DNA from: Selaginella moellendorffii
Lineage: Eukaryota > Plantae > Lycopodiophyta
Length of the DNA: 64,000 bases
Reading direction: 5' to 3'
NCBI RefSeq assembly: GCF_000143415.4
Contig: NW_003314335.1
Span: forward strand, 650,113 to 714,112
In this document: positions 54,028 through 56,387 of the stretch, piece after piece
How positions within the stretch are numbered: the first letter of the stretch is position 1
Layout of the letters: the number at the start of each line of letters is the position of its first letter
Notes under the pieces: model-generated
Told to the model about the DNA's origin: nothing
What the model saw: the letters and a program-made list of their open reading frames with translations, nothing else
Databases searched by the model: none
Position numbers and translations under genes: made by a program

Positions 54028-56387
54028 ATGATGGCGCTAGTACCGGCGCACGATCACCTCAAATGGGAGGGGAGCCGGCATTTCACCACGACGCTAGCCG
54101 AGATAGGTGCGTTCCTTGATCCATCGCCTCCAGATTCGGGATTACCGCTCGTTTTTTCGTGCCAGGATCGTCGTGCGAGGAGATCAAGTTCAGTGGATGG
54201 GTGGAGAAGATCAACAGCAAAGGCTACGTCCAGCCGCGGGTGCTTGTCATCACGGATTTGGCCCTCTACAACTTCCGGGGAGGCTTTTTCACGCAGTGCA
54301 AGAGAAGGATCGATATGAGGGTCATCGATTCCATTGTCCGGAGCAAGTATAGCCAGCAGTTCATCCTATGCTGCCCAGAGGTGTGGGGTTTTCATTGCTA
54401 GCAAAAGATTGTATGAATCGTTTTCTTTCGTGTCTGTGGCAGGAATATGACTATCATTACTCGAGCTCTCGTGTGTCCGAGATTTGCGATACCCTCGTCG
54501 CTGTTTATCGAGTGGTGACTGGAAAAACACTGGCTGTGGATTTAAAGGTGACCGATCACTTGTTTTTGCTCAGCTGTCAAAACGTTGGAATCAGCAGACA
54601 AATAAGAACTTATTTCCTTACGTTGCGACAAGGAAAGACTCAAAGACAGGATTGAAGGTACCAGCCTCTGCCTGTTTGTCTTCGGCATGTCTTAAGTTTA
54701 GCTTCCAGTCTAAACGGTATGCCTTGTCATCGAGGAAGCTTGGTGAATGGGACACGGTAAGCAGTCTAGTCTTGGACTTGTCTCATCAAGGTTGCTGCTC
54801 CAGAGATTTAGCGTCGAACAGTCAGACGACTGGCAAGTGGAGCCAAGAAGTCGATCCGAAANNNNNNNNNNNNNNNNNNNNNNNNNNNNNNNNNNNNNNN
54901 NNNNNNNNNNNNNNNNNNNNNNNNNNNNNNNNNNNNNNNNNNNNNNNNNNNNNNNNNNNNNNNNNNNNNNNNNNNNNNNNNNNNNNNNNNNNNNNNNNNN
55001 NNNNNNNNNNNNNNNNNNNNNNNNNNNNNNNNNNNNNNNNNNNNNNNNNNNNNNNNNNNNNNNNNNNNNNNNNNNNNNNNNNNNNNNNNNNNNNNNNNNN
55101 NNNNNNNNNNNNNNNNNNNNNNNNNNNNNNNNNNNNNNNNNNNNNNNNNNNNNNNNNNNNNNNNNNNNNNNNNNNNNNNNNNNNNNNNNNNNNNNNNNNN
55201 NNNNNNNNNNNNNNNNNNNNNNNNNNNNNNNNNNNNNNNNNNNNNNNNNNNNNNNNNNNNNNNNNNNNNNNNNNNNNNNNNNNNNNNNNNNNNNNNNNNN
55301 NNNNNNNNNNNNNNNNNNNNNNNNNNNNNNNNNNNNNNNNNNNNNNNNNNNNNNNNNNNNNNNNNNNNNNNNNNNNNNNNNNNNNNNNNNNNNNNNNNNN
55401 NNNNNNNNNNNNNNNNNNNNNNNNNNNNNNNNNNNNNNNNNNNNNNNNNNNNNNNNNNNNNNNNNNNNNNNNNNNNNNNNNNNNNNNNNNNNNNNNNNNN
55501 NNNNNNNNNNNNNNNNNNNNNNNNNNNNNNNNNNNNNNNNNNNNNNNNNNNNNNNNNNNNNNNNNNNNNNNNNNNNNNNNNNNNNNNNNNNNNNNNNNNN
55601 NNNGCTTACAGAGAAAACAACATTGCAGGCCATGTTAAACTTACTGACTTCGGACTCGCTAAGAAGGCCATTCTAGATAACAAGTCAGCGTCGACGTTTT
55701 GTGGCACTCCTGAGTATATCGGTGCGTGTTTTATAACCTGTGATTAGCTCTTGACACTAACGGTGCCACCCCAAGCGCGTCTTCAGCCCCAGAAATCCTC
55801 TGCAATTCAGGCCATGGTCGAGCTGCAGACTGGTGGAGCCTTGGAACACTGTTATACGAAATGTTGTGCGGGCTGGTAAGTTCATTCTAGATGCTCCATT
55901 TCATTCGAAGTTTTAATCCGGAAAATACAGCCTCCTTTCTATCATAAGAACGTGAACATCATGTATGATAGGATTCTCAACGCCAAGCTGACGTTTCCTG
56001 CTTTCCTCACTCCCGTGGCACGAGACCTTCTCTCCAAGGTAACGCAAACGATCGATCACTTGGAACTCACTATCTGTTGCTAGCAGTTGCTCGTGAGAAA
56101 TCCTGAGACGCGGCTGGGAGCTGGACAGAGGGACTATGAAGAGATTATAGAGCACCAGTTCTTCGCATCAGTGAATTGGACAAGCATGCTACAGAAGAAA
56201 ATCCGGCCGCCCTTCGTTCCACAAGTGAAGGTATGATGGCTGTATACAAGTTGAGCACTGCTGACAGCCCGATAGTTTCCATCTTGGACAGGCAGCCGAT
56301 GATGTTGGAAACTTCGACGTGGTATTTACGTGTGAACAAATCACAACTACAGTGTGGTATGCTGATCAGTTTATTGGAGAGCGCTGA
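54028..56387 (+). CDS. AGC-group Ser/Thr kinase (S6K/SGK/Akt-like) with an N-terminal myosin-I TH1 (PH-like) domain; kinase N-lobe lies in the gap
   Basis: [31 protein letters not shown]...KRRID...EYDY; after the gap [57 protein letters not shown]. Linkage across the gap is inferred. Confidence 0.75.
54862..55603. other. Assembly gap (742 N)
   Basis: Run of N. Confidence 1.

Follow-up and report, generated by a model that had tools for sequence, protein, structure and literature searches.

A Myosin_TH1–AGC kinase gene in the lycophyte Selaginella moellendorffii, a land-plant member of a widespread and uncharacterised algal and protist kinase family

A kinase of the Akt type, with a lipid-binding module before an AGC kinase domain, is to our knowledge usually said to be lacking in plants. 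Among TH1 domains, the best point of reference is the tail of the myosin Myo1c, in which either of the substitutions K892A and R903A abolishes PIP2 (phosphatidylinositol 4,5-bisphosphate) binding and membrane targeting, according to the passage of PMC3771945 that cites Hokanson et al. 2006. Plants have only myosins VIII and XI (PMC3942036), therefore the plant TH1 domains considered here stand outside the myosins. In rice, a motor-less protein described as containing a myosin-TH1 domain (LOC_Os01g43360) has been reported to interact with the SCD2 trafficking complex, with which it was pulled down (PMC9157159). The nearest literature to a TH1-kinase is a passing mention of a STE11-TH1 kinase in Takifugu (PMC4177888). 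The gene reported here lies on the + strand of a 64,000 nucleotide (nt) stretch of Selaginella moellendorffii DNA (NW_003314335.1, 650,113–714,112), which is referred to as the window and whose positions are used throughout. From the N-terminus, its product has a TH1 (PH-like) domain, a linker of about 60 amino acids (aa) and an AGC kinase domain. An earlier reading of the letters alone, referred to as the sequence-only reading, had proposed a TH1 domain fused to an Akt-like kinase that is recruited to lipids. The strings that it quoted are present on the + strand, and its statement on plant myosins agrees with PMC3942036. The best overall explanation, with a probability of about 0.6, is that this is a TH1–AGC kinase gene and that the TH1 domain recruits the kinase to lipids. 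Taken separately, it is highly probable that there is one TH1–AGC kinase gene of an algal and protist family here, and the chances of the lipid-recruitment mechanism are about even.

The letters of the window are identical throughout to GenBank record GL377639.1, in which the 742 N between the TH1 exons and the kinase exons are a genuine scaffold gap. Public RNA runs were aligned to window 53950–56450. One spliced transcript contig (X1 record 1; 2413 nt, depth 33) holds exons 1 to 6 from upstream of the gap together with the five kinase exons downstream of it, and about 447 nt of this contig, in contig coordinates, match neither side of the gap. In the contig, the ATG at 54028 falls at position 74 and the His codon of 55631 at position 1088; both are 2 mod 3, therefore the TH1 and kinase halves share one frame. 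Raw RNA reads of X6 and X7 cover three of the joints as well as the E11>K1 link. The joints in these reads are of the GT..AG type, and the mates are oriented in the opposite sense to those of reads from the minus-strand gene that converges on this one. The joint between exons 1 and 2 (54104>54164, GT..AG, cut +2) is found in the contig and in one raw X6 read, and the transcript joints of exon 4 are 54545>54596 and 54651>54703, the second being compatible with a canonical GT..AG cut at 54657/54709. Three raw X7 reads that end at 55627 extend upstream into sequence encoding ..KAENVLLDA(E), which is the catalytic loop expected in the gap.

The allelic locus (L001, scaffold GL377570.1) is ungapped in this region, its sole run of N being at L001 3681–3780. 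Window 53802–54861 aligns to L001 24320–25379 (99.2%) and window 55604–60683 aligns to L001 26122–31173 (98%). Exactly 742 nt lie between these blocks in L001, matching the 742 N of the gap to the base. The allelic 742 nt consist, in their exonic part, of the last 2 nt of exon 6 and exons of 81, 120, 111, 95 and 38 nt with canonical splice sites, and this exonic sum of 447 nt is the exact length required by the transcript contig. If the gap size is exact, the five exons would lie at window 54914–54994, 55051–55170, 55220–55330, 55385–55479 and 55537–55574. They are free of stop codons and encode the full N-lobe and catalytic loop (GKGAFGK, LAMK, ..TERHILE, HPFIVSLRYAFQT, GGELFYHL, YRDLKAEN and LLDAE), among which are GKGAFGK as the G-loop, LAMK with the catalytic Lys, the αC Glu and HPFIV..AFQT. 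The two haplotypes are identical over 53950–54861 (exons 1 to 6), and there are amino acid differences between them in the kinase tail exons (window 56109, 56293 and 56296 against L001; ETRLG/EKRLG and AADD/GGDD).

The publicly annotated alternative, two separate adjacent genes, one for a small TH1 protein and one for a kinase that is short at its N-terminus, is very improbable. The NCBI models are split in this way on both haplotypes (168 aa and 176 aa here, 202 aa and 317 aa on the allele), and a contig spanning two genes is no formal proof of a single transcript. The model XP_024516129.1 (P0001) corresponds to the first three exons, with XP_024525820.1 (P0151) as its allelic twin. However, the public TH1 models end by reading into intron 3, which the RNA contig splices, and all exons are united in that contig in one frame with exactly the exonic length that the allele predicts. 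The orthologues elsewhere are likewise single TH1-kinase proteins of 500–590 aa. There is therefore one gene of 17 exons, with a coding sequence of 54028–56356 plus the A at 56411, a product of about 503 aa, and introns of only 47–65 nt in the full gene model. The sequence-only reading had taken the two parts as one gene and had asked for the gap to be closed or for a cDNA joining them; the ungapped allele now fills the 742 nt and the transcript contig makes the join. The public models at the locus (XP_024516129.1 and the 176-aa kinase fragment, and the allelic pair) should become one 503-aa protein.

Selaginella comparisons were made exon by exon or with the public fragment P0001; the exons were compared singly with about 280 proteins. 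Exon 2 alone (window 54168–54380, 71 aa) matches Pfam PF06017, Myosin_TH1, at 41.1 bits against a gathering score of 31.1 (E 1.9e-10). The myosin-I TH1 pattern that had been noted in the N-terminal exons is therefore real and far beyond chance. In an alignment of the TH1 regions of 18 family members (A1), with residue numbers as in P0001, the invariant positions are Lys41, Asn43, Gln49, Arg51, Tyr61-Asn62, Arg73 and Ile75. A profile of this alignment has a sole match among solved proteins, which is the myosin-1c tail 4R8G_E (E 6.9e-6). With phmmer, exon 2 found nothing real among the PDB sequences; only the family profile reached Myo1c. The family Lys and Arg (K41 and R51) align on the Lys and Arg of VVKYDRKGYKPRPRQLLLT, which occupy chain positions 199 and 210, a spacing of 11 residues. 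These positions are Myo1c K892 and R903, provided that the 335-residue chain ends at residue 1028. The signature basic residues of the β1–β2 site, equivalent to K892 and R903, are in this alignment kept in the Selaginella TH1 domain as K41 and R51.

An AlphaFold (AF2) model of P0001 residues 1–133, made with A1, has a predicted local distance difference test score (pLDDT) of 92.7 and a predicted template modelling score (pTM) of 0.86, and consists of a PH-like sandwich with a C-terminal helix. In a Foldseek search of the PDB with this model, the CARMIL PH domain and the Myo1c tail are at the top and classical PH domains come next. Of these, 4R8G_E has the highest identity at 23% (E 1.8e-6, TMq 0.65). 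The nearest clusters in a shape search of the Atlas with the same model are TH1 proteins, with TH1-kinase clusters at a TM of 0.84–0.88. The TH1 domain is probably membrane-lipid-binding. It is quite unlikely that the domain is instead a protein- or actin-binding or autoinhibitory module, with the kinase targeted to a trafficking complex and not to lipid. This would be consistent with the sharing of the top structural match with the CARMIL PH domain and with the PH-like protein-binding domains of talin F3, Sec3 and TBC1D23, as well as with the SCD2 vesicle-trafficking complex pull-down of the TH1-only rice protein. Against this, both of the basic residues that mark the phosphoinositide site of Myo1c are invariant across 18/18 of the aligned family members.

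The exons after the gap match Pfam Pkinase, and the last of them matches Pkinase_C at 19.5 bits, which bears out the proposal of an AGC kinase C-lobe downstream on the same strand. With the C-lobe in the window and the N-lobe from the allele, in one in-frame contig, there is a complete kinase domain on the TH1 polypeptide. All of the catalytic motifs are intact and the activation-loop Thr of T-F-C-G-T-x-E-Y is present (STFCGTPEY, exon K1). The best matches of the kinase exons are green-algal TH1-kinases, with 59–63% identity over about 290–300 residues (the Cymbomonas tetramitiformis KAK3245901.1 cluster and Chloropicon primus). The Chlorokybus TH1-kinase has 58% exon-wise kinase identity to Selaginella, and the animal RSK, SGK3 and S6K have 51–52%. 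The TH1 exons are also nearest to Chloropicon, with 57/114 residues identical (about 50%). Both domains point to the same relatives, therefore an inherited fused gene is favoured over a new fusion. The identities of the algal kinases among themselves are 66–75% for three of them and 51–52% where the flawed Chlorokybus model is included; judged by these identities, the divergence of the Selaginella kinase is no larger than that among the algae. When the kinase of Chloropicon P0190 (residues 190–523) is compared with solved structures, the scores are 358 bits for S6K1, 348 for SGK1, 339 for RSK2, 339 for Akt and 332 for PKA. By sequence the kinase is classed as a basal AGC kinase, similar to S6K, SGK, RSK and Akt, and is no clear member of one named subfamily.

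The C-terminus had been described as a truncated hydrophobic motif with the ending DQFIGER followed by a stop. The absence of the motif stands, but this ending does not, being a read-through of the last intron. The transcript contig splices 56356 to 56411, where TG and A form the stop codon, and the spliced protein ends ...EQITTTV. The 'AT' found in the contig between the two sides of this joint corresponds to the allele T at 56412, where the window has G. A motif F-x-x-[FY]-[STDE]-[FYW] is found near the C-terminus in 82/88 TH1-kinases, and the Selaginella protein stops before it. The relatives run about 25 residues further, through the turn-motif region to F-x-G-F-[ST]-[YF]. In Selaginella the start of Pkinase_C (NFD..FT) is present, and the turn motif and the hydrophobic motif F-x-x-F-[ST]-[YF] are absent. 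Since the spliced mRNA itself ends at ...EQITTTV, the hydrophobic motif is truly lost, and this loss is specific to Selaginella.

With exon 2 as the query, an exhaustive HMMER search gave 173 proteins at E up to 0.001. Among the best 150 matches, nine have a kinase motif after the TH1 domain; Pfam confirms both domains in 9/9 of these and five also pass the Pkinase_C cut-off. When the kinase part of one TH1-kinase was used as the query, about 90 of the best 120 relatives carried PF06017, PF00069 and PF00433, and the named sources among these 120 include Hondaea, Chloropicon, Cafeteria and a Palpitomonas-like MMETSP entry. The automatic name given to the TH1-kinases by the Joint Genome Institute (JGI) is 'serum/glucocorticoid-regulated kinase 2'. 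In the Atlas there is a TH1 and Pkinase cluster of 5,834 members, among which ciliates are commonest. Proteins with TH1, Pkinase and Pkinase_C occur in large numbers in green algae (Chlorokybus, Chloropicon, Cymbomonas), in stramenopiles and ciliates, and in metagenomes. No paper describing the TH1 and AGC kinase architecture was found in full-text searches of the literature. The earlier view of the locus as an undescribed system is nonetheless not upheld, since the searches of the best 120 relatives and of the Atlas show that the architecture is catalogued and widespread in algae and protists; it is only unstudied. The Selaginella gene belongs to this TH1–AGC kinase family, based on its N-terminal Myosin_TH1 domain, its kinase and its nearest relatives in both domains. 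It is a land-plant survivor of a widespread, uncharacterised algal and protist kinase family.

The algal and protist identity of the nearest relatives could also be the result of a contaminant or of recent horizontal transfer from an alga or protist, and there is one record that looks like such a contaminant. BAK00435.1 (P0248), attributed to Hordeum vulgare, is a complete TH1-kinase known from a cDNA record only, and no genome contig goes with it in the collection used. The identity of its kinase to that of Selaginella is 54%, which is below the green algae, and the record is probably a cDNA-library contaminant. The Selaginella gene, however, occurs on the scaffolds of both haplotypes, where it is flanked by exportin, LOB and PIGA genes and has PPR genes close by. 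This plant gene neighbourhood on both scaffolds and the introns of Selaginella size indicate a plant nuclear origin, and there are in addition a second, diverged paralogous locus and a possible clubmoss remnant. The probability of contamination or recent transfer is negligible, these having been ruled out by synteny and intron structure.

The distribution in land plants rests on those TH1 matches that have a named organism; most of the best 150 are without one, and a restriction to lycophytes is therefore provisional. The named land-plant relatives are the two Selaginella haplotypes, a second Selaginella locus and a 108-aa model of Diphasiastrum complanatum. On this provisional basis a complete TH1–AGC kinase is very rare in land plants, with that of Selaginella the only complete one among the named relatives. 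There was no positive sign of bryophyte or fern members among the relatives with a named organism. Word-index searches with TH1 regions (P0050, 1–130, and P0156, 150–290) returned only the clusters of the queries themselves, which says little on absence in other plants. The sequence-only reading had suggested retention only in lineages with flagellated sperm, which predicts that the gene is present in bryophytes and ferns and absent from non-flagellates. The named land-plant relatives are from lycophytes, not bryophytes or ferns, and the family is also present in Chloropicon, which is coccoid and is not known to be motile. The sperm idea does not fit this named distribution and is therefore unsupported.

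The second Selaginella locus, LOC9642432 with its allele (P0002/P0156; L003 6001–8467, GL377587.1), is 64% identical in TH1 exon 2. The TH1 domain and the linker are retained in it, and of the kinase N-lobe there is a stump (..LKVFKVIDE / LYVMKNKKTGETFALK), the intron position being unchanged. The glycine loop has been deleted, no kinase sequence follows β3, and the next gene, on the other strand, encodes a proteasome subunit. In Diphasiastrum (KAJ7530581.1; CM055105.1, L002 10001–10637) only the equivalent of TH1 exon 2 is found, at 50% identity, and there is no EYDY exon or kinase motif within 10 kb downstream of it. Two readings fit this locus, a remnant and a gene whose introns are very long. 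An intron-rich TH1-kinase gene is present on a contig of SRR23617307 (L004 3015–7449, GC content 53%) and shares most of its exon boundaries with the Selaginella gene. The common boundaries are the exon end ..VPE and the exon starts EYDY, V.LV, AVQHPF, PE.L, PPFY and LL.R. The kinase exons of this gene are 50–76% identical to those of Selaginella, and its contig ends before the C-terminal tail. It may be a streptophyte relative. The best shape match in the Atlas is a 226-aa cluster of TH1-only proteins, with a phylum recorded for 87/90 members and Streptophyta the commonest. This match, together with the rice protein, makes it probable that TH1 domains occur in seed plants.

It is unlikely, although this is the main rival explanation, that the Selaginella gene is a decaying relic that is transcribed and open but on its way to loss, with no lipid-gated signalling left. 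The turn and hydrophobic motifs kept in 82/88 relatives are gone, the Selaginella paralogue is without a glycine loop and without kinase sequence after β3, a single TH1 exon is found within 10 kb in Diphasiastrum, and RNA read counts are low. Against this, all of the catalytic motifs are intact, K41 and R51 are retained and the frame stays open over 17 exons in two haplotypes. The kinase identity to green algae given above is likewise within the range among algae, subject to the same flawed Chlorokybus model.

In the preferred explanation, the conserved pair Lys41/Arg51 would let the TH1 domain bind acidic phosphoinositides in the manner of the Myo1c tail. This binding would bring the kinase to the membrane, or would free it from an autoinhibited state. 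At the membrane, PDK1 would phosphorylate the activation-loop Thr of STFCGTPEY. The design logic would equal that of Akt, with its PH domain, or SGK3, with its PX domain. Loss of the turn and hydrophobic motifs means that there is no TOR-type phosphorylation of the hydrophobic motif and no docking of PDK1 through that motif. The Selaginella form may be regulated by co-localisation alone, or may be a weakened relic. The earlier proposal of a lipid-recruited, Akt-analogous kinase is plausible in so far as a PH-like TH1 domain comes first, an AGC kinase second, and the K892 and R903 equivalents are kept; the binding itself is a prediction from sequence and model. A wider proposal, which is speculative and has the odds against it, is that TH1–AGC kinases correspond to Akt in the green lineage and in protists, as a growth or polarity kinase that was recruited by phosphoinositides, activated by PDK1 and present in the land-plant ancestor. 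Lycophytes would then keep the last complete copy, without its hydrophobic motif. The TH1-only proteins of seed plants such as LOC_Os01g43360 would descend from it by loss of the kinase, and an intermediate of this loss would be seen in the Selaginella paralogue and its kinase stump.

Several points weigh against the preferred explanation. Non-specific lipid binding and protein binding are also found among TH1 domains. In full-text searches of the literature, no measured lipid binding, kinase activity or localisation was found for any member of the TH1–AGC kinase family. The N-lobe of this haplotype is unread and is taken from the allele. The RNA genotype differs from both assembled haplotypes at 54308, 54472, 54494 and 55645, therefore expression holds for the locus and not for this copy. 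Expression is also low: about 1.4 gigabases (Gb) were sampled per run, and the two RNA runs gave 3 and 6 reads. The loss of the hydrophobic motif, the kinase-less paralogue and the lone Diphasiastrum TH1 exon together suggest that the family is decaying in lycophytes. The significance of the gene is limited in that databases already show the architecture and in that the Selaginella gene may be undergoing degeneration.

Table 1. Features of the TH1–AGC kinase gene and their positions in the window
Feature	Position	Strand	Description
5' untranslated region	53955–54027	+	Start is that of the transcript contig (X1 record 1); no ATG before 54028
Exon 1	54028–54106	+	Start codon and N-terminal TH1 lead-in ..HDHLKWEG..; GT donor at 54107
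Exon 2	54166–54380	+	TH1/PH-like core; K41 codon 54207–54209, R51 codon 54237–54239
Exon 3	54443–54547	+	EYDY strand and C-terminal helix of PH-like fold
Exon 4	54598–54657	+	TH1 end and linker start; 60 nt, in frame
Exon 5	54709–54756	+	Linker, 48 nt; transcript joints
Exon 6	54804–54861	+	Linker; last 2 nt inside gap; joint 54755>54803; allele L001 25322–25381
Scaffold gap, 742 N	54862–55603		In allele: end of exon 6 (2 nt) and five exons
Kinase exon K1	55629–55721	+	DFG and activation loop; PDK1-type Thr in STFCGTPEY, Thr codon 55694–55696
Kinase exon K2	55787–55875	+	APE, DWWSLG
Kinase exon K3	55931–56038	+	Translation and transcript joints
Kinase exon K4	56087–56230	+	C-lobe end, AGC tail start
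Kinase exon K5	56292–56356	+	Pkinase_C part NFD..FT; final TG opens stop codon; joint 56356>56413, GT..AG
Last intron	56357–56410	+	Read-through gives the DQFIGER-stop ending; public 176-aa model ends in this way (window 56387)
Terminal exon	56411–56450	+	First base A completes TGA; rest is 3' untranslated region; converges on minus-strand LOB gene

The surroundings of the gene are an ordinary plant nuclear context. The LOB-domain gene that converges on the kinase gene is at 56600–57283 (minus strand; Pfam LOB, 123 bits). Reads of opposite orientation start directly after the kinase stop (56386–56450) and the X1 contig extends about 830 nt past this stop, therefore the 3' ends of the kinase and LOB genes probably overlap. 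About 2 kb upstream of the gene, at about window 51780, some 7.3 kb of the allelic scaffold (L001 14936–22283) are absent from the window, representing a haplotype-specific insertion or deletion. The public TH1 model of the allele starts 19 kb upstream and its first exon is doubtful. Elsewhere in the window there are two PPR genes, one of which has an E motif, together with a cyclophilin-RRM gene and an exon of PIGA (GPI-GlcNAc transferase), at 4603–7797 (+), 24406–26157 (+), 2443–3471 (−) and 58626–59270 (−). An open reading frame at 26672–27874 (−) has a Slo-like RCK domain of the calcium-activated, BK-type potassium channels (E 2e-11), a channel type that is unusual in plants.

A lipid-type module joined to an AGC kinase, with TH1 replacing PH, thus existed in the green lineage and is still complete in one vascular plant. 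Thousands of members are found in algae and protists, therefore any result on lipid binding or kinase activity would annotate a very large group.

Among described and catalogued proteins, those most like the Selaginella protein are the TH1–AGC kinases of algae and protists (Chloropicon primus P0190, Cymbomonas KAK3245901.1, Chlorokybus Chrsp49S00481 and Hondaea fermentalgiana), which have the same domain order, a similar length and, in common with Selaginella, the invariant K/N/Q/R..YN..RRI motif in TH1. Unlike these, the Selaginella protein is about 25 residues shorter at its C-terminus and has neither the turn motif nor F-x-G-F-[ST]-[YF]. Akt/PKB, SGK3 with its PX domain and PDK1 with its C-terminal PH domain likewise combine a phosphoinositide-type membrane module with an AGC kinase. 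The PDK1-type activation-loop Thr is shared with Akt/PKB, and the score of the Chloropicon P0190 kinase against Akt is close to that against SGK1 (339 and 348 bits). However, the canonical PH domain of Akt/PKB (PF00169) is absent from the Selaginella protein, for which Pfam gives Myosin_TH1 (PF06017) only and no PX domain, and so is the hydrophobic motif of the FPQFSY type. The Selaginella kinase is no Akt orthologue, and the score of the family member is slightly higher for S6K1 (358 bits). With the plant S6K the comparison is through the same family kinase, that of Chloropicon P0190, which is most like S6K1 among the solved structures. S6K is not known to have an N-terminal TH1 domain and retains a hydrophobic motif that is phosphorylated by TOR. 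The myosin-I tail (Myo1c, 4R8G) has the same Pfam family, the same fold and the residues equivalent to K892 and R903, whereas the Selaginella protein, unlike myosin I, has no motor and no IQ motifs, its TH1 domain beginning at a distance of about 7 residues from the contig's first ATG.

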